From: Macrostomum hystrix
Lineage: Eukaryota; Animalia; Platyhelminthes
Direction: 5' to 3'
Assembly (NCBI GenBank): GCA_950097015.1
Contig: CATNEN010000029.1
Coordinates: forward strand, 5,146,001 to 5,210,000
Length of the DNA: 64,000 nucleotides
The notes beneath the pieces were generated by a model. The model was not told where the DNA came from. It saw only the letters and a program-made list of their open reading frames with translations, and did no database searches. Numbering within the stretch: the first letter of the stretch is position 1; every line of letters begins with the position of its first letter. Below are positions 50,631 to 64,000 of the stretch, piece after piece. Made by a program: the position numbers and the translations under genes.

Positions 50631-51443
50631 AGCTTTAAAAAGCTGTAAATTCAGCTGCTAAAAAGTATATACTAGACGAATTAAAAGTATTTCTGCTCCC
50701 CGAAGGGGGGCAAAACTTGCTAGTCATTTACTCAAACTTCACCGAGGAAGCATTTGAGTACAGTGTGAGATTGAAATCAAACTGATAAGTCCGAGGGTTC
50801 ATAGCAGTTGCACTGCATAGCAGCAAAAGACAGAACACATTTTATTTGGCCGCATTAAAAAAATTGCAGCTTAAAGAAAATGCTTTGTGTTTTCATATTC
50901 AGTAGTTTGAGGCAGAATGTTTTCGCATGCGTTACGTTAAAGTACAGCGTAGGTAACTGCTTCGGAATCGGCCTGAGGCTCAACTAGAAAGCAAGCAAAA
51001 ATTAAAACAAATCAACGATCATATAGTGCAAGAAGTAGTGCTCAAATTGGCGAGCATTAAAATCAGGCATAGACTAAAATTAATCGAAAGTAGAACTTCA
51101 AGGCAGCTGTGCAGAGAGCAAAAGTGCACAATTTTGAGGTCGGCAGGCAGTTTATGTTACGCGATTAATATGCATATGAGAAGGAAAAACAACATGGAAT
51201 TTGATTTAATGAAAACAAAAAATAACCAAGAATAAATCACATTTTTGCTGCGAGTTTTGCATATAGAGAGACTGCGCGACAACTGCGCCACGGAGGCTTC
51301 GTTGTAGTTTGGATTTTCAATTCTCGATCACACTGGCTTGATCAAATCGACTTTTATAGTGACACATCGTTAAAATTGTCCTTCGGTCATGACTTTGAGC
51401 AGGTTGGCAACCAATCAATCATTGGGATCTGGGACTACTGGAA

Positions 51444-51746
51444 TCAGCACTTCAGCCAGGCTGGCGGAGTCTTGCCCTGCTTCCTATACCTGTTGCACTC
51501 GTACGCTCGCATGAGCACATTCTCAGGTCCGCGCCGCTTCCGGTTGAGCACGGCCTCGCCGACATCCGGGCGCTGCCTCATCAGGTAGGTCAGCGATTGC
51601 GCAACAGCCAGACGATTGTCTTCAATCGGTTCGGCGTTCAAATCGAGTAGCAACGCTTTCGAAGGCGACAGGGCGACGGCGTCCAGGACTGGTAGGAGGA
51701 CCATCGATAGCGCCAGACAGAATTGAAGGCCTGTGTTGAGTAGCAT
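51444..51746 (-). CDS. Secreted prepropeptide, copy 1 (100 aa; signal peptide, RKRR, 28-aa two-Cys mature peptide GPENVLMRAYECNRYRKQGKTPPAWLKC)
   Basis: Intronless ORF with a hydrophobic N-terminus, an acidic pro region and a furin-type R-K-R-R at residues 69-72. A paralogue lies 2.96 kb away, and TATA plus Inr lie upstream. Confidence 0.8.
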   Translation of the reverse strand: MLLNTGLQFCLALSMVLLPVLDAVALSPSKALLLDLNAEPIEDNRLAVAQSLTYLMRQRPDVGEAVLNRKRRGPENVLMRAYECNRYRKQGKTPPAWLKC

Positions 51747-51820
51747 AGCTTCGTCAAATAGCTGTCAGTGTTCTCTTGGCTGTGTCTCTAATTGTCTCTC
51801 TCTCTCTCGGTCAAGTGAAG

Positions 51821-51853
51821 TGAACTGGGACTGCCGCCGCTGGCCTATTTATA
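51821..51853 (-). promoter_or_regulatory. Core promoter of peptide gene copy 1 (TATA box and initiator)
   Basis: Minus-strand TATAAATA at 51853-51846; Inr-like CCAGTT with its A at 51825, 28 nt downstream. Confidence 0.7.
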
Positions 51854-52063
51854 ACCGGCTCCGGGCGGCGGCTGGGGTGTCTGCGCCGGCTTGGAATCGC
51901 CTTCTATTTTTAGCTCCTCCCCCGCCGCCGCCGCCGCCCCCAGTCCGGAGCAGCTGAGGGGCGTGGGAATAGAGCCTTCTAGTCTGACGCATTTCGCGGC
52001 CAATCGACCCGCTGCAGCGGCAGACTGGACAATCTGGCCCAAGTTTTCAAATGAATGAACCAA

Positions 52064-52460
52064 TGACTCAGGCCCGAAAATGGACTTTGCCAATGCAGGC
52101 GTAGGGGAACCAATAGCGGATAAGTGTGTAGGCAGTCTGCTTTGAAGAAGAGGCTGTGCCTTGTTTACAAAATATAGCTTTCACAAATAAAAAAGCAGTG
52201 CATTCCAACCTAACAAACTGAAATAAAATACTATGGAGAATGCTAAGCGCGGCCACTGATGTCTGCCCCCCCCCACTCCGCAACACAGACTTGCGAATTC
52301 CACACGGCTTTACAATTTTACAATTTACAACCTAGACCAGCCTCGACTTTCTTAATAAGGGCCTTTTTGCTCTCCGCTCAGACAGACAATGCTTTAATTA
52401 ATGCATCCAAACTCCCAAGTGAGGTTTTGGGTGAGTCAGGCTTTAGTCAGGCCTGACTCA
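52064..52460. promoter_or_regulatory. Cluster of three AP-1 (TGA[C/G]TCA) sites upstream of peptide gene copy 1
   Basis: TGACTCA 52064-52070, TGAGTCA 52432-52438, TGACTCA 52454-52460. Confidence 0.45.
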
Positions 52461-52994
52461 TGTCTCACTTCAGCTGCTCATAAGTGTCTAGGGAAGTGTC
52501 TAGTGTTTACATTTTTTTCAGGGAAAATTCAACGTTGTTAGAGAATCAGGCGGAGTGTTGGGAGAACGCCCACAACTTCCTTGGCTAACAGAAATGGGAC
52601 AGGGCTCTACCAACAGGCCGCGCCGCCCACGCAGTCCTCCATTTGTCCGATAGCTCCTAGCTGTAGCTAATACCCAAGTTCCAGCGAGTATTAAGCAGCT
52701 TTTTTATGTCGGAAGATTTGCCCAAGCTTTCTCCCGCAAGTGAGTACAATTTGATTCTAAACTGTTGGTGCATGCAAACAGCAGGTGTCTCAAGGTCCGC
52801 CTACCTCCTGTGCAAACACTGCACTAGCGGAGCTGCATTCTGAGTGCGAGTAAACGTCGCCATTGTCACTGACTGCTCAAATTTTAATTCAATGTCAAAT
52901 AATGCTTTCGGTGCATGGAATGCTCTTATCTGTCTTCTCTAGCTTGTCAGCAGGGTAGGATAGTGCCGATAGCACACCAAAAGCCGCATTCCAC

Positions 52995-54025
52995 ACTTTG
53001 CTCTTCCACAGATCTCACTGTTTCCTTTATAGATCTCACCCGCTCTACTATGGATCTCACCGTCTCCTTTATAGATCTCACCCGCTCTACTATGGATCTC
53101 ACTGACTCCTTTATAGATCTCACCCGCTCTACTATGGATCTCACCGTCTCCTTTATAGATCTCACCCACTCTACTATGGATCTCACTGTCTCCTTTATAG
53201 ATCTCACCCGCTCTACTATGGATCTCACTGACTCCTTTATAGATCTCACCCGCTCTACTATGGATCTCACCGTCTCCTTTATAGATCTCACCCGCTCTAC
53301 TATGGATCTCACCGTCTCCTTTATAGATCTCACCCGCTCTACTATGGATCTCACTGACTCCTTTATAGATCTCACCCGCTCTTCCATGGATCTCCCCTAT
53401 CTTCTCTGAATCTCACCCTCTCTTCTCAGAATCTCACCTTCTCTTTTCTAAATATCATCCTGTCTTCTCTGGATCTCACCCTGTCCTCTATTGATCTCAA
53501 CCTCTCTTCTATTGATCTCACCCTCTCTTCTATTGATCTGACCCCCTCTTCTATTGATCTCACCCTGTCCTCTATTGATCTCACCCTCTCTTCTATTGAT
53601 CTGACCCCCTCTTCTATTGATCTCACCCTGACTTCTCTGAATATCATCCTCTCTTCTCTGGATCTCACCCTCTCTTCTATGGATCTCACCCTCTCTTCTC
53701 TGGATCTCACCCTGTCTTCTCTGGATTTCACCCTGTCTTCTCTGGATCTCAACCTCTCTTCTATGGATCTCACACTGTCTTCTATGGATCTCAACCTCTC
53801 TTCTATGGATCTCACCCTGTCTTCTATGGATCTCACCCTGTCTTCTCTGGATCTCACCCTCTCTTCTCTGGATCTCACCCTCTATTCTCTGGACCTCACC
53901 TATCTTCTATGGATCTCATCCTGTCTTCTCTGAATCTCACCCTCTCTTCAATAGATCTCACCCTCTCTTCTCTGAATCTCACCCTCTCTTCAATAGATCT
54001 CACCCTCTCTTCTCTGAATCTCACT
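52995..54025. repeat. 21-bp minisatellite (42-bp dimer in its first half) between the two peptide genes
   Basis: Unit gatctcaccctctcttctatg; dimer atggatctcaccgtctcctttatagatctcacccgctctact. Confidence 0.95.
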
Positions 54026-54031
54026 AAAATC

Positions 54032-54809
54032 GACTAAAATTAATTGACAGTAGAACTTCAAGGCAGCTGTGCAGAGAGCAAAAGTGCACAATTTTGAGGT
54101 CGGCAGGCAGTTTATGTAACGCGATTAATATGCATATGAGAATCAATATGGAATTTGATTGAAGGAAAACAAAAAGAAAAAATATCCAAGAATAAATCAC
54201 ATTTTTGCTGCGAGTTTTGCATATAGAGAGACTGCGCGACAACTGCTCCACGGAGGCTTCGTTGTAGTTTGGATTTTCAATTCTCGATCACACTGGTTTG
54301 ATCAAATCAACTTTTATAGTGTCACATCGTTAAAATTGTCCTTCGGTCATGACTTTGAGCAGGTTGGCAACCAGTCAATCATTGGGATCTGGGACTACTG
54401 GAACCAGCACCTCAGCCAGGCTGGCGGAGTCTTGCCCTGCTTCCTATACCAGTTGCACTCGTACCATCGCATGAGCACATACTCAGGTGCTCGCCGCTTC
54501 CGGTTGAGCACGGCCTCGCTGACATCCGGGCGCTGCCTCATCAGGTAGGTCAGCAGTTGCGCAACAGCCAGACGATTGTCTTCAATCGGCTCGGCGTTCA
54601 AATCGAGTAACAACGCTTTCGAAGGCGACAGGGCGACGGCGTCCATGACTGGTAGGAGGACCATCGATAGCGCCAGACAGAATTGAAGGCCTGTGTTGAG
54701 TAGCATAGCTTCGTCAAATAGCTGTCAGTGTTCTCTTGGCTGTGTCTCTAATTGTCTCTCTCTCTCGGTCAAGTGAAGTGAACTGGGACTGCCGCCGCTG
54801 GCCTATTTA
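54032..54809. repeat. ~780-bp segmental duplication of 51072-51851 carrying peptide gene copy 2
   Basis: Colinear near-identity from gactaaaattaat to gcctattta. Confidence 0.95.
54395..54706 (-). CDS. Secreted prepropeptide, copy 2 (103 aa; mature APEYVLMRWYECNWYRKQGKTPPAWLRCWFQ)
   Basis: Same architecture as copy 1 with an intact ORF, but the TATA box is interrupted by a mariner element. Confidence 0.75.
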   Translation of the reverse strand: MLLNTGLQFCLALSMVLLPVMDAVALSPSKALLLDLNAEPIEDNRLAVAQLLTYLMRQRPDVSEAVLNRKRRAPEYVLMRWYECNWYRKQGKTPPAWLRCWFQ

Positions 54810-55400
54810 CGAGGGTTGTGTGATAAATTCGCTGACATACTTTCATAGCGTCTGTTTCTTTTGTACTTCGGGGCAGAATTTTTCGATGCTCGTACAGACT
54901 AAGGTACCATCGATCTTATTGTCTATGGAAAATGTTCCCTCTGGCTTTTGAGACAAGGCAGAAATCGAGTGGCATTCAAACCACCCTTTTATCCAGTATG
55001 GAGAAAAGTGAAGCTACCAAGCGCAGTGCACTGTCTTTTCGTCGTTGTGGAAGCAGCAGAAGAAGCAGGCTGATATTTACCCCGAGCTGCTGCAAATCTT
55101 TAGCGAGGATGCACCTTCGAAACAAACTGTGTCAAACTAAACTGCTGACTCCTGTCCAACTGCAAGAGAGGGTCCAGATGTGCCGCCACCTACTCAACGC
55201 CTATCAAAACGAGCACGACTTTCTTGGCCGCCTGGTGACTGGTGATGAAACACGTGGTTTCACTTCTACGAACCAGAAACGAAACGGCAGAGCAGCGTCT
55301 GGAAGGCTACTCACGAACCCCCACCGGTCAAGGCCAAGGCGGTGCAGTCAGCAGGTAAGCGCATGGCCACCGTGTTCTGGGACAGAGAAGGCATCTTGCT
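54810..55400 (+). mobile_element. Degenerate mariner (Tc1/mariner superfamily) DNA transposon, left part
   Basis: Starts after TA (54808-54809) with CGAGGGTTGTGTGATAAATTCGC, where homology to copy 1 ends abruptly; transposase fragments follow. The right TIR is not inside the window. Confidence 0.88.
54998..55400 (+). pseudogene. Mariner transposase pseudogene
   Basis: Fragments in shifting frames: MEKSE; LWKQQKKQADIYPELLQIFSEDAPSKQTVS (HTH); KLLTPVQLQERVQMCRHLL...FLGRLVTGDET; WFHFYEPETKRQSSVW...KAKAVQSAGKRMATVFWDREGILL. There is an internal deletion, a 2-bp duplication after GDET, and truncation by the satellite. Confidence 0.9.
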
Positions 55401-58400
55401 GCAGTCAATTTAAAGTTGCAGTCTATTTACAGTTGCAGTCTATTTACAGTTGCAGTCTATTTACAGTTGCAGTCTATTTACAGTTGCAGTCTATTTAAAG
55501 TTGCAGTCTATTTACAGTTGCAGTCTATTTAAAGTTGCAGTCTATTTAAAGTTGCAGTCTATTTACAGTTGCAGTCTATTTAAAGTTGCAGTCTATTTAA
55601 AGTTGCAGTCAATTTAAAGTTGCAGTCTATTTACAGTTGCAGTCTATTTAAAGTTGCAGTCTATTTAAAGTTGCAGTCTATTTAAAGCTGCAGTCAATTT
55701 AAAGTTGCAGTCTATTTAAAGTTGCAGTCTATTTAAAGTTGCCGTCTATTTAAAGTTGCAGTCTATTTAAAGTTGCAGTCTATTTACAGTTGCCGTCTAT
55801 TTAAAGTTGCAGTCTATTTACAGTTGCAGTCTATTTACAGTTGCCGTCTATTTAAAGTTGCAGTCTATTTACAGTTGCAGTCTATTTAAAGTTGCAGTCT
55901 ATTTACAGTTGCAGTCTATTTAAAGTTGCAGTCTATTTACAGTTGCAGTCTATTTACAGTTGCAGTCTATTTAAAGTTGCAGTCTATTTACAGTTGCAGT
56001 CTATTTAAAGTTGCAGTCTATTTACAGTTGCAGTCTATTTAAAGTTGCAGTCTATTTAAAGTTGCAGTCTATTTACAGTTGCAGTCTATTTACAGTTGCC
56101 GTCTATTTAAAGTTGCAGTCTATTTACAGTTGCAGTCTATTTACAGTTGCAGTCTATTTACAGTTGCAGTCTATTTAAAGTTGCAGTCTATTTACAGTTG
56201 CAGTCTATTTACAGTTGCCGTCTATTTAAAGTTGCAGTCTATTTACAGTTGCAGTCTATTTACAGTTGCAGTCTATTTAAAGTTGCAGTCTATTTAAAGT
56301 TGCAGTCTATTTACAGTTGCCGTCTATTTAAAGTTGCAGTCTATTTACAGTTGCAGTCTATTTAAAGTTGCAGTCTATTTAAAGTTGCAGTCTATTTAAA
56401 GTTGCAGTCTATTTACAGTTGCAGTCTATTTACAGTTGCCGTCTATTTAAAGTTGCAGTCTATTTACAGTTGCAGTCTATTTAAAGTTGCAGTCTATTTA
56501 CAGTTGCAGTCTATTTACAGTTGCAGTCTATTTAAAGTTGCAGTCTATTTAAAGTTGCAGTCTATTTACAGTTGCAGTCTATTTAAAGTTGCAGTCTATT
56601 TACAGTTGCAGTCTATTTACAGTTGCAGTCTATTTACAGTTGCAGTCTATTTACAGTTGCAGTCTATTTACAGTTGCAGTCTATTTAAAGTTGCAGTCTA
56701 TTTACAGTTGCCGTCTATTTAAAGTTGCAGTCTATTTACAGTTGCAGTCTATTTACAGTTGCCGTCTATTTAAAGTTGCAGTCTATTTAAAGTTGCAGTC
56801 TATTTACAGTTGCAGTCTATTTACAGTTGCAGTCTATTTAAAGTTGCAGTCTATTTACAGTTGCAGTCTATTTAAAGTTGCAGTCTATTTAAAGTTGCAG
56901 TCTATTTACAGTTGCAGTCTATTTACAGTTGCAGTCTATTTACATTTGCAGTCTATTTAAAGTTGCAGTCTATTTACAGTTGCAGTCTATTTACAGTTGT
57001 AGTCTATTTAAAGTTGTAGTCTATTTAAAGTTGCGGTCTATTTACAGCTGCAGTCTATTTAAAGTTGCAGTCTATTTAAAGTTGCAGTCTATTTAAAGTT
57101 GCAGTCTATTTAAAGTTGCAGTCTATTTACAGTTGCCGTCTATTTAAAGTTGCAGTCTATTTAAAGTTGCAGTCTATTTAAAGTTGCAGTCTATTTACAG
57201 TTGCAGTCTATTTACAGTTGCAGTCTATTTACAGTTGCAGTCTATTTAAAGTTGCAGTCTATTTACAGTTGCAGTCTATTTAAAGTTGCAGTCTATTTAC
57301 AGTTGCAGTCTATTTAAAGTTGCAGTCTATTTAAAGTTGCAGTCTATTTACAGTTGCAGTCTATTTACAGTTGCAGTCTATTTAAAGTTGCAGTCTATTT
57401 ACAGTTGCAGTCTATTTACAGTTGCAGTCTATTTACAGTTGCAGTCTATTTACAGTTGCCGTCTATTTAAAGTTGCAGTCTATTTACAGTTGCCGTCTAT
57501 TTAAAGTTGCAGTCTATTTACAGTTGCAGTCTATTTAAAGTTGCAGTCTATTTAAAGTTGCAGTCTATTTACAGTTGCCGTCTATTTAAAGTTGCAGTCT
57601 ATTTACAGTTGCAGTCTATTTAAAGTTGCAGTCTATTTAAAGTTGCAGTCTATTTACAGTTGCAGTCTATTTACAGTTGCAGTCTATTTACAGTTGCAGT
57701 CTATTTAAAGTTGCAGTCTATTTACAGTTGCCGTCTATTTAAAGTTGCAGTCTATTTACAGTTGCAGTCTATTTACAGTTGCCGTCTATTTAAAGTTGCA
57801 GTCTATTTAAAGTTGCAGTCTATTTACAGTTGCAGTCTATTTACAGTTGCAGTCTATTTAAAGTTGCAGTCTATTTAAAGTTGCAGTCTATTTACAGTTG
57901 CAGTCTATTTAAAGTTGCAGTCTATTTACAGTTGCCGTCTATTTAAAGTTGCAGTCTATTTAAAATTGCAGTCTATTTACAGTTGCAGTCTATTTACAGT
58001 TGCAGTCTATTTACAGTTGCAGTCTATTTAAAGTTGCAGTCTATTTACAGTTGCCGTCTATTTAAAGTTGCCGTCTATTTACAGTTGCAGTCTATTTACA
58101 GTTGCAGTCTATTTACAGTTGCAGTCTATTTACAGTTGCAGTCTATTTACAGTTGCCGTCTATTTAAAGTTGCAGTCTATTTACAGTTGCAGTCTATTTA
58201 CAGTTGCAGTCTATTTAAAGTTGCAGTCTATTTACAGTTGCAGTCTATTTACAGTTGCAGTCTATTTACAGTTGCAGTCTATTTACAGTTGCAGTCTATT
58301 TACAGTTGCAGTCTATTTACAGTTGCAGTCTATTTAAAGTTGCAGTCTATTTACAGTTGCAGTCTATTTACAGTTGCAGTCTATTTACAGTTGCCGTCTA

Positions 58401-61400
58401 TTTAAAGTTGCAGTCTATTTAAGGTTGCAGTCTATTTACAGTTGCAGTCTATTTACAGTTGCAGTCTATTTAAAGTTGCAGTCTATTTACAGTTGCAGTC
58501 TATTTAAAGTTGCAGTCTATTTAAAGTTGCAGTCTATTTACAGTTGCAGTCTATTTACAGTTGCAGTCTATTTAAAGTTGCAGTCTACTAACAGTTGCCG
58601 TCTATTTAAAGTTGCAGTCTATTTAAAGTTGCAGTCTATTTACAGTTGCAGTCTATTTAAAGTTGCAGTCTATTTACAGTTGCCGTCTATTTAAAGTTGC
58701 AGTCTATTTAAAATTGCAGTCTATTTACAGTTGCAGTCTATTTACAGTTGCCGTCTATTTAAAATTGCAGTCTATTTAAAGTTGCAGTCTATTTAAAGTT
58801 GCAGTCTATTTAAAGTTGCAGTCTATTTAAAGTTGCAGTCTATTTAAAGTTGCAGTCTATTTAAAGCTGCAGTCAATTTAAAGTTGCAGTCTATTTACAG
58901 TTGCAGTCTATTTAAAGTTGCCGTCTATTTAAAGTTGCAGTCTATTTAAAGTTGCAGTCTATTTACAGTTGCCGTCTATTTAAAGTTGCAGTCTATTTAC
59001 AGTTGCAGTCTATTTACAGTTGCCGTCTATTTAAAGTTGCAGTCTATTTACAGTTGCAGTCTATTTAAAGTTGCAGTCTATTTACAGTTGCAGTCTATTT
59101 AAAGTTGCAGTCTATTTACAGTTGCAGTCTATTTACAGTTGCAGTCTATTTAAAGTTGCAGTCTATTTACAGTTGCAGTCTATTTAAAGTTGCAGTCTAT
59201 TTACAGTTGCAGTCTATTTAAAGTTGCAGTCTATTTAAAGTTGCAGTCTATTTACAGTTGCAGTCTATTTACAGTTGCCGTCTATTTAAAGTTGCAGTCT
59301 ATTTACAGTTGCAGTCTATTTACAGTTGCAGTCTATTTACAGTTGCAGTCTATTTAAAGTTGCAGTCTATTTACAGTTGCAGTCTATTTACAGTTGCCGT
59401 CTATTTAAAGTTGCAGTCTATTTACAGTTGCAGTCTATTTACAGTTGCAGTCTATTTAAAGTTGCAGTCTATTTAAAGTTGCAGTCTATTTACAGTTGCC
59501 GTCTATTTAAAGTTGCAGTCTATTTACAGTTGCAGTCTATTTAAAGTTGCAGTCTATTTAAAGTTGCAGTCTATTTAAAGTTGCAGTCTATTTACAGTTG
59601 CAGTCTATTTACAGTTGCCGTCTATTTAAAGTTGCAGTCTATTTACAGTTGCAGTCTATTTAAAGTTGCAGTCTATTTACAGTTGCAGTCTATTTACAGT
59701 TGCAGTCTATTTAAAGTTGCAGTCTATTTAAAGTTGCAGTCTATTTACAGTTGCAGTCTATTTAAAGTTGCAGTCTATTTACAGTTGCAGTCTATTTAAA
59801 GTTGCAGTCTATTTACAGTTGCAGTCTATTTACAGTTGCAGTCTATTTACAGTTGCAGTCTATTTAAAGTTGCAGTCTATTTACAGTTGCCGTCTATTTA
59901 AAGTTGCAGTCTATTTACAGTTGCAGTCTATTTACAGTTGCCGTCTATTTAAAGTTGCAGTCTATTTAAAGTTGCAGTCTATTTACAGTTGCAGTCTATT
60001 TACAGTTGCAGTCTATTTAAAGTTGCAGTCTATTTACAGTTGCAGTCTATTTAAAGTTGCAGTCTATTTAAAGTTGCAGTCTATTTACAGTTGCAGTCTA
60101 TTTACAGTTGCAGTCTATTTACATTTGCCGTCTATTTAAAGTTGCAGTCTATTTACAGTTGCAGTCTATTTACAGTTGTAGTCTATTTAAAGTTGTAGTC
60201 TATTTAAAGTTGCGGTCTATTTACAGCTGCAGTCTATTTAAAGTTGCAGTCTATTTAAAGTTGCAGTCTATTTAAAGTTGCAGTCTATTTAAAGTTGCAG
60301 TCTATTTACAGTTGCCGTCTATTTAAAGTTGCAGTCTATTTAAAGTTGCAGTCTATTTAAAGTTGCAGTCTATTTACAGTTGCAGTCTATTTACAGTTGC
60401 AGTCTATTTACAGTTGCAGTCTATTTAAAGTTGCAGTCTATTTACAGTTGCAGTCTATTTAAAGTTGCAGTCTATTTACAGTTGCAGTCTATTTACAGTT
60501 GCAGTCTATTTAAAGTTGCAGTCTATTTACAGTTGCAGTCTATTTAAAGTTGCAGTCTATTTAAAGTTGCAGTCTATTTACAGTTGCAGTCTATTTACAG
60601 TTGCCGTCTATTTAAAGTTGCAGTCTACTTACAGTTGCCGTCTATTTAAAGTTGCAGTCTATTTAAAGTTGCAGTCTATTTACAGTTGCAGTCTATTTAA
60701 AGTTGCAGTCTATTTAAAGTTGCAGTCTATTTACAGTTGCCGTCTATTTAAAGTTGCAGTCTATTTACAGTTGCAGTCTATTTAAAGTTGCAGTCTATTT
60801 AAAGTTGCAGTCTATTTACAGTTGCAGTCTATTTACAGTTGCAGTCTATTTACAGTTGCAGTCTTTTTAAAGTTGCAGTCTATTTACAGTTGCCGTCTAT
60901 TTAAAGTTGCAGTCTATTTACAGTTGCAGTCTATTTACAGTTGCCGTCTATTTAAAGTTGCAGTCTATTTAAAGTTGCAGTCTATTTACAGTTGCAGTCT
61001 ATTTACAGTTGCAGTCTATTTAAAGTTGCAGTCTATTTAAAGTTGCAGTCTATTTACAGTTGCAGTCTATTTAAAGTTGCAGTCTATTTACAGTTGCCGT
61101 CTATTTAAAGTTGCAGTCTATTTAAAATTGCAGTCTATTTACAGTTGCAGTCTATTTACAGTTGCAGTCTATTTACAGTTGCAGTCTATTTAAAGTTGCA
61201 GTCTATTTACAGTTGCCGTCTATTTAAAGTTGCCGTCTATTTACAGTTGCAGTCTATTTAAAGTTGCAGTCTACTAACAGTTGCCGTCTATTTAAAGTTG
61301 CAGTCTATTTAAAGTTGCAGTCTATTTACAGTTGCAGTCTATTTAAAGTTGCAGTCTATTTACAGTTGCCGTCTATTTAAAGTTGCAGTCTATTTAAAAT

Positions 61401-64000
61401 TGCAGTCTATTTACAGTTGCAGTCTATTTACAGTTGCCGTCTATTTAAAATTGCAGTCTATTTAAAGTTGCAGTCTATTTAAAGTTGCAGTCTATTTAAA
61501 GTTGCAGTCTATTTAAAGTTGCAGTCTATTTAAAGTTGCAGTCTATTTAAAGCTGCAGTCAATTTAAAGTTGCAGTCTATTTACAGTTGCAGTCTATTTA
61601 AAGTTGCCGTCTATTTAAAGTTGCAGTCTATTTAAAGTTGCAGTCTATTTACAGTTGCCGTCTATTTAAAGTTGCAGTCTATTTACAGTTGCAGTCTATT
61701 TACAGTTGCCGTCTATTTAAAGTTGCAGTCTATTTACAGTTGCAGTCTATTTAAAGTTGCAGTCTATTTACAGTTGCAGTCTATTTAAAGTTGCAGTCTA
61801 TTTACAGTTGCAGTCTATTTACAGTTGCAGTCTATTTAAAGTTGCAGTCTATTTACAGTTGCAGTCTATTTAAAGTTGCAGTCTATTTACAGTTGCAGTC
61901 TATTTAAAGTTGCAGTCTATTTAAAGTTGCAGTCTATTTACAGTTGCAGTCTATTTACAGTTGCCGTCTATTTAAAGTTGCAGTCTATTTACAGTTGCAG
62001 TCTATTTACAGTTGCAGTCTATTTACAGTTGCAGTCTATTTAAAGTTGCAGTCTATTTACAGTTGCAGTCTATTTACAGTTGCCGTCTATTTAAAGTTGC
62101 AGTCTATTTACAGTTGCAGTCTATTTACAGTTGCAGTCTATTTAAAGTTGCAGTCTATTTAAAGTTGCAGTCTATTTACAGTTGCCGTCTATTTAAAGTT
62201 GCAGTCTATTTACAGTTGCAGTCTATTTAAAGTTGCAGTCTATTTAAAGTTGCAGTCTATTTAAAGTTGCAGTCTATTTACAGTTGCAGTCTATTTACAG
62301 TTGCCGTCTATTTAAAGTTGCAGTCTATTTACAGTTGCAGTCTATTTAAAGTTGCAGTCTATTTACAGTTGCAGTCTATTTACAGTTGCAGTCTATTTAA
62401 AGTTGCAGTCTATTTAAAGTTGCAGTCTATTTACAGTTGCAGTCTATTTAAAGTTGCAGTCTATTTACAGTTGCAGTCTATTTAAAGTTGCAGTCTATTT
62501 ACAGTTGCAGTCTATTTACAGTTGCAGTCTATTTACAGTTGCAGTCTATTTAAAGTTGCAGTCTATTTACAGTTGCCGTCTATTTAAAGTTGCAGTCTAT
62601 TTACAGTTGCAGTCTATTTACAGTTGCCGTCTATTTAAAGTTGCAGTCTATTTAAAGTTGCAGTCTATTTACAGTTGCAGTCTATTTACAGTTGCAGTCT
62701 ATTTAAAGTTGCAGTCTATTTACAGTTGCCGTCTATTTAAAGTTGCAGTCTATTTAAAGTTGCAGTCTATTTAAAGTTGCAGTCTATTTACAGTTGCAGT
62801 CTATTTACAGTTGCAGTCTATTTACAGTTGCAGTCTATTTAAAGTTGCAGTCTATTTACAGTTGCAGTCTATTTAAAGTTGCAGTCTATTTACAGTTGCA
62901 GTCTATTTACAGTTGCAGTCTATTTAAAGTTGCAGTCTATTTACAGTTGCAGTCTATTTAAAGTTGCAGTCTATTTAAAGTTGCAGTCTATTTACAGTTG
63001 CAGTCTATTTACAGTTGCCGTCTATTTAAAGTTGCAGTCTACTTACAGTTGCCGTCTATTTAAAGTTGCAGTCTATTTAAAGTTGCAGTCTATTTACAGT
63101 TGCAGTCTATTTAAAGTTGCAGTCTATTTAAAGTTGCAGTCTATTTACAGTTGCCGTCTATTTAAAGTTGCAGTCTATTTACAGTTGCAGTCTATTTAAA
63201 GTTGCAGTCTATTTAAAGTTGCAGTCTATTTACAGTTGCAGTCTATTTACAGTTGCAGTCTATTTACAGTTGCAGTCTTTTTAAAGTTGCAGTCTATTTA
63301 CAGTTGCCGTCTATTTAAAGTTGCAGTCTATTTACAGTTGCAGTCTATTTACAGTTGCCGTCTATTTAAAGTTGCAGTCTATTTAAAGTTGCAGTCTATT
63401 TACAGTTGCAGTCTATTTACAGTTGCAGTCTATTTAAAGTTGCAGTCTATTTAAAGTTGCAGTCTATTTACAGTTGCAGTCTATTTAAAGTTGCAGTCTA
63501 TTTACAGTTGCCGTCTATTTAAAGTTGCAGTCTATTTAAAATTGCAGTCTATTTACAGTTGCAGTCTATTTACAGTTGCAGTCTATTTACAGTTGCAGTC
63601 TATTTAAAGTTGCAGTCTATTTACAGTTGCCGTCTATTTAAAGTTGCCGTCTATTTACAGTTGCAGTCTATTTACAGTTGCAGTCTATTTACAGTTGCAG
63701 TCTATTTACAGTTGCAGTCTATTTAAAGTTGCAGTCTATTTACAGTTGCAGTCTATTTACAGTTGCAGTCTATTTACAGTTGCAGTCTATTTACAGTTGC
63801 AGTCTATTTACAGTTGCAGTCTATTTAAAGTTGCAGTCTATTTACAGTTGCAGTCTATTTACAGTTGCAGTCTATTTACAGTTGCCGTCTATTTAAAGTT
63901 GCAGTCTATTTAAGGTTGCAGTCTATTTACAGTTGCAGTCTATTTACAGTTGCAGTCTATTTAAAGTTGCAGTCTATTTACAGTTGCAGTCTATTTAAAG
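55398..64000. repeat. 17-bp satellite, ~500 copies, continuing beyond the window, with kb-scale higher-order repeats
   Basis: Unit (c/a)agttgc(a/c)gtctattta; rare variant gctgcagtcaattta at ~55687, 58866 and 61552. Confidence 0.99.

Follow-up and report, generated by a model that had tools for sequence, protein, structure and literature searches.

In a tandem pair of peptide genes of the flatworm Macrostomum hystrix, the TATA box of one gene (copy 2) was found to be interrupted at a TA by the end of a mariner transposon, while the corresponding box of the other gene (copy 1) is intact. The DNA analysed, hereafter the window, is a stretch of 64,000 nucleotides of contig C29 (G000:C29:5146001-5210000). 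The exact terminus of the element adjoins the TA, and the box TATAAATA has become CGTAAATA, in agreement with the preliminary description of this DNA, which had placed the insertion there. A LINE is nested in the mariner, the right side of the mariner is absent, and a minisatellite specific to this locus lies on both sides of the junction (Table 1). The history that would connect these features, namely duplication of the gene, insertion of the mariner, nesting of the LINE, a deletion and copying of the whole locus, has in our estimation a probability of about 0.7.

Table 1. Features of the peptide gene pair and the inserted elements, in window positions
Feature	Position	Strand	Remarks
Peptide gene copy 1, ORF	51444-51746	minus	100-aa precursor: signal peptide, KRR cleavage site, 28-aa two-Cys mature peptide
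Intact TATAAATA of copy 1	51846-51853	minus	unoccupied target TA at 51850-51851
B0, upstream block of copy 1	51852-53027		1176 bp; three AP-1-like TGASTCA sites (52064, 52432, 52454)
21-bp minisatellite, locus-specific	53028-54024		junction of the tandem duplication; the 18 units proximal to B0 form a 42-bp higher-order variant
Block A', holding copy 2	54025-54809	minus	3' flank, ORF, 5' UTR, Inr-like site, TATA remnant ..TAAATA
Peptide gene copy 2, ORF	54395-54706	minus	103-aa precursor, derived Trp-rich mature peptide, stop-to-Trp change adding WFQ
Target TA at the insertion junction	54808-54809		last dinucleotide shared with copy 1
Left part of non-autonomous mariner	54810-55401	+	element positions 1-321 and 555-817 of 1288; last 2 nt ambiguous with the array
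17-bp tandem-repeat 5' head of a LINE (APE and RT family)	55400-64000, on to window-equivalent 64511	+	nested in the mariner at element position 817

The gene pair and the junction at the TA

Alignment of the two genes showed a common block of about 785 bp (about 51065-51851 for copy 1), which is about 95% identical in the two copies up to the TA. Copy 1 reads ...GGCCTATTTATAACCGG across this site, and copy 2 reads ...GGCCTATTTA up to the TA and CGAGGGTTGTG immediately after it. Past the shared TA, copy 1 continues into TAACCGG, copy 2 continues into the transposon, and the two sequences are unrelated. The earlier statement that homology between the copies ends at the TA was thus borne out by the alignment.

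On the gene strand, both copies have an Inr-like CCAGTT, with its A (51826 in copy 1, 54784 in copy 2) 27 nt downstream of the T that opens the TATA box. In copy 1 this A precedes the ATG by 80 nt, and a TATA consensus stands at the proper distance (about 25-32 nt) from the Inr-like site. Outside one satellite, the window has few occurrences of TATAAATA. The TATA box and the Inr-like site of copy 1 together form a putative core promoter. In copy 2, CG has replaced the first two bases of the box, TAAATA is kept, and everything upstream is transposon. The genome paper of M. lignano (PMC5730564) does not mention TATA or initiator motifs.

The Inr-like site, the 5' UTR and the ORF of copy 2 had been described as intact, and this holds: between the TA and the ATG there is no substitution in 103 nt relative to copy 1, with a single length difference (TC), and the ORFs of both copies are open. 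The 3' flank and the coding sequence each differ by 4.6%. The 5' UTR and core promoter (51747-51851 versus 54707-54809) are thus free of substitutions, whereas the DNA alongside differs by 4.6%, which could reflect either constraint or a short gene-conversion tract.

In both precursors the N-terminus is hydrophobic; there is also a KRR site, and the mature peptide is 28-31 aa long and contains two Cys. A Pfam search of both precursors and a word-based protein search with the precursor gave no match. In an exhaustive search, the only protein relatives of the precursor were two hypothetical proteins of Macrostomum lignano (E 3e-17, 60% identity), whose mature peptide closely matches that of copy 1 and likewise ends at the second Cys; a literature search on the M. 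lignano gene id found nothing. A distant paralog of 101 aa on contig C38 (L055:1366-1671, equal to G000:C38:20613545-20613850) has the same layout of signal, dibasic site and two-Cys mature peptide, and has a TATAAAT of its own, 70 nt ahead of the ATG. From copy 1 and this one distant paralog only, we infer that the ancestral gene probably had a TATA box.

The mariner fragment and the LINE nested in it

A search of the genome (220,453,370 bases in 42 contigs) with positions 54809-55399 matched dozens of copies. At more than 20 other termini the sequence reads NN-TA-CGAGGGTTGTGTCATAAATTCGCTGAC, in which the bases before the TA are variable. Since the TA is followed at all these termini by a constant CGAGGG, the element starts at CGAGGG and duplicates the TA. 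A full copy (L012:1502-2789) has a length of 1288 bp, inverted ends and a TA on both sides. The terminal inverted repeats (TIRs) are about 29 bp long, and the inverted arms are 94-97% complementary. The 335-aa ORF of this copy matched Pfam Transposase_1 (E 2e-22) and the Mos1-type HTH_48 (E 1e-7). By hand count in this ORF, the D of LQQD is separated from that of APSD by 34 residues, and the first catalytic D was assigned, by analogy, to the GDET motif. The family is therefore a DD34D mariner, and position 54810 of the window is its first base. A homology break that falls on the first base of an element directly after a TA is a signature of transposition and not of random rearrangement.

The copy in the window carries frameshifts and an internal deletion of 233 bp (element positions 322-554). 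Its transposase direction points away from the peptide gene, and the 5' end of the element faces the gene. Because copies on C38 and at C29:7.30 Mb, two further and independent loci, have the same deletion, the deleted derivative was mobilised in trans. The window copy stops at element position 817, so that its right end and the second TA are absent; this concerns the copy and not the family. The copy is a dead mariner fragment that has the characters of its family although the right end is missing.

The family resembles the DD34D group that includes Mos1, Himar1 and Hsmar1 in its TA target with duplication, its TIRs of about 29 bp, its length of about 1.3 kb, its Transposase_1 domain with a Mos1-type HTH and its DD34D triad, and also in having internally deleted, non-autonomous derivatives mobilised in trans. 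Classic mariner TIRs begin with YYAGGT, whereas that of the M. hystrix element starts with CGAGGG. The window copy differs further in being a dead fragment truncated by a nested LINE.

The mariner gives way at position 817 to an array of 17-bp repeats, which ends 511 bp past the window and is followed by about 0.83-0.96 kb of LINE body and then by a second array of the 21-bp minisatellite. Arrays of the 17-bp repeat were also found on contigs C1 (3.94 Mb), C7 (6.79 Mb) and C24 (2.33 Mb). The same LINE sequence follows each of them, and the junction between array and body is the same at these three sites and at both loci on C29, while the left flanks differ. The LINE at C1 (L048) encodes an APE endonuclease and a reverse transcriptase (Exo_endo_phos, E 7e-17; RVT_1, E 5e-30). 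Since the same array heads the same LINE sequence at unrelated loci, what the preliminary description had taken for a satellite beyond the mariner is the 5' head, built of tandem repeats, of a LINE that lies within the mariner. For the same reason, a satellite grown from the mariner itself was rejected as an origin of the array.

Mouse L1 is known for the tandemly repeated monomers of its 5' UTR. The M. hystrix LINE is similar in that an array of variable length forms the 5' head of a retrotransposon with APE and RT. It differs in that the unit is only 17 bp and that the array has expanded to 9.1 kb at the window locus, compared with 0.24-0.8 kb at the other copies.

Positions 1-50630 of the window contain more than 25 different minisatellite arrays with units of 15-81 bp, each up to 3 kb long, at intervals of 1-2 kb. 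Such a density is in line with the load of tandem repeats reported in M. lignano (PMC5730564). One of the crowding satellites is now seen to be the expanded 5' head of a LINE, and this may explain part of the minisatellite load of Macrostomum; some of the many minisatellites of the genome may likewise be heads of transposable elements.

The missing right side and the proposed order of events

The whole arrangement is present twice on contig C29. The second locus, at C29:124-131 kb, contains both gene copies, the same mariner junction, the same junction between mariner and LINE, the LINE fragment and the two 21-bp arrays. Over at least 85 kb, the window is collinear with C29:80.5-148 kb, 5 Mb away; this large repeat would be a segmental duplication or, alternatively, a duplicate made in the assembly. 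From window position 188 to 64000 and beyond, the blocks aligned with G000:C29:80475-148000 are roughly 91-99% identical, and differ mainly in the length of minisatellites.

The insertion is documented from one side only. No right half and no right TIR of the mariner was found within 29 kb beyond the end of the window. The preliminary description had named the lack of a right TIR, a second TA and a resumed promoter past the supposed satellite as evidence against an insertion, and in the assembly all three are indeed lacking. The missing right side leaves the insertion unrefuted, because the nested LINE and a later deletion would account for the absence. The upstream block B0, like its first 28 nt alone, occurs genome-wide only beside copy 1, in the two large locus copies, and is not found next to copy 2. 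The earlier claim that copy 2 is separated from its AP-1 cluster by more than 9 kb must therefore be revised: copy 2 has lost its cluster, and the only one nearby is that of copy 1, which lies 3' of copy 2.

The 21-bp minisatellite was informative in this respect. All 48 matches to its repeat in the genome fall in four arrays of this pair of loci, one between B0 and copy 2, one after the LINE fragment, and the counterparts of both in the second locus. Since an array also follows the B0 of copy 1, the duplicated unit consisted of the gene, the upstream block and the array; and since this unit included the upstream block, copy 2 once had an upstream block of its own, hereafter B0'. The array beyond the LINE lacks the 42-bp higher-order variant of the 18 units proximal to B0. 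A single deletion extending from the LINE across the right side of the mariner and B0' into the array would leave the array in just this state.

On the basis of these observations, the locus would have arisen as follows. A unit of gene block A, upstream block B0 and 21-bp minisatellite would have been duplicated in tandem. A non-autonomous, internally deleted mariner would then have inserted into the first TA of the TATAAATA of copy 2, leaving the box as CGTAAATA, and a LINE with its 17-bp tandem-repeat head would later have inserted into the mariner at element position 817. One deletion would have taken out what else there was of the LINE, the right-hand 471 bp of the mariner, including the TIR and the duplicated TA, the whole upstream block of copy 2 and the proximal part of the 21-bp array. 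The finished arrangement would then have been copied within a larger block (at least 85 kb), unless it is doubled only in the assembly. The order of these events and the singleness of the deletion are what we infer from the arrangement, and the same applies to any effect on transcription; a LINE insertion followed by one deletion is the simplest history.

It is worth considering two other origins of the junction. One is that a breakpoint of the duplication, or of another rearrangement, chanced on the end of a pre-existing mariner. The presence of only one side of the insertion, in a region rich in rearrangements and minisatellites, is what such an event might leave. The break, however, matches the terminus of the element and the TA to the base, and the 21-bp array on both sides indicates that the duplicated unit ran well past the junction. 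We therefore regard a chance breakpoint as very improbable. The other is that the mariner inserted into the ancestral single gene and that the TATA box of copy 1 (TA plus TA) is the footprint of its excision, so that the box was made by the transposon. Copy 1 does read TT-TA-TA-AC, as two target TAs would without element bases between them. Excision of mariner, however, normally leaves element bases between the TAs; there are none here, and TACGAGTA is absent at the copy 1 site. In addition, the distant paralog has a TATA motif of its own, and an extra step would be needed. This origin is hardly credible, and the sequence argues that the site in copy 1 was probably never occupied by a mariner. 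Elsewhere in the window, TACGAGTA occurs three times (19900, 36021 and 38105) against 0.8 expected, a mild enrichment that is compatible with scars of mariner excision.

Copy 2 with its altered TATA box

In the reading preferred here, copy 2 has lost both the intact TATA box and its own upstream block to the insertion and the later deletion. It is possible that this loss ended transcription, so that copy 2 is a silenced, decaying duplicate whose changes are neutral drift; we hold this tentatively, at somewhat below even odds. The change from TATAAATA to CGTAAATA and the disappearance of B0' would fit such a fate. The two copies differ at 12 coding nucleotides with an overall pN/pS of 0.91, and the protein changes fall nearly all on copy 2 where the outgroup can polarise them. 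In the second locus, moreover, the Inr-like motif of copy 2 is broken by an insertion of 2 bp. Against silencing, copy 2 has an open ORF in each locus, and its coding sequences in the two loci are identical (0/312), compared with 17/1056 differences (1.6%) in the adjacent non-coding and mariner DNA; the probability of this contrast is about 0.006 if the local rate is applied, and about 0.06 with the locus-wide rate. The changes between copies 1 and 2 are also uneven: pN/pS is 0.37 in the prepro part, whereas the mature peptide has six nonsynonymous changes, no synonymous change and the loss of the stop. The absence of substitutions between the TA and the ATG is likewise not what drift would lead us to expect. 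Taken together, the sequence comparisons lean slightly towards copy 2 being still under constraint, against a long-dead gene.

If copy 2 is transcribed, it would most likely use the Inr-like site and the weakened AT-rich remnant of the box, possibly together with the upstream block of copy 1. This block lies about 1.4-2.9 kb downstream of the start site of copy 2, and its three AP-1-like heptamers would have to work as a downstream enhancer to affect copy 2. A further step would be that copy 2 is expressed from a TATA-weakened promoter remodelled by the transposon, that it borrows the AP-1-like block of copy 1, and that its mature peptide, rich in Trp and longer at the C-terminus, is an adaptive new function that arose with this rewiring. 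We consider this extended reading unlikely, if by no means negligible.

It is well established that transposons insert into promoters, and the TA-rich elements of a core promoter offer mariner natural targets; the event is of an ordinary kind, and nothing in it overturns known mariner or promoter biology. Gene expression is altered, for example, by P-element insertions in promoters and by the mariner of the white-peach allele of Drosophila mauritiana. The M. hystrix case is the same in that a DNA transposon lies in the promoter or 5' region and the coding sequence is untouched. It is different in that it was read from sequence alone and in that the target is a member of a recent tandem pair whose upstream promoter half was later deleted. 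What it offers is a resolved natural case of a TA-targeting transposon in a TATA box, and it comes with an internal control, the untouched paralog at a distance of 3 kb. RNA-seq data for M. hystrix have been published (Wiberg et al. 2023, PMC10468722). Mapping of such reads could measure the effect of losing the TATA box and all upstream sequence on a flatworm promoter, and could also tell drift from new function for the fast-changing mature peptide of copy 2.

The C-terminus of this peptide deserves a separate remark. In copy 1, the frame past the TGA stop (51435-51443) reads TTC CAG TAG, as in the WFQ tail of copy 2, and the stop codon of copy 1 is one base apart from the Trp codon of copy 2. 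The paralog on C38 has a tail of three residues, SFD, after its last Cys, which resembles WFQ. The direction of the change between stop and Trp is ambiguous on this comparison, since the M. lignano peptide ends at the Cys and the C38 paralog has a tail.
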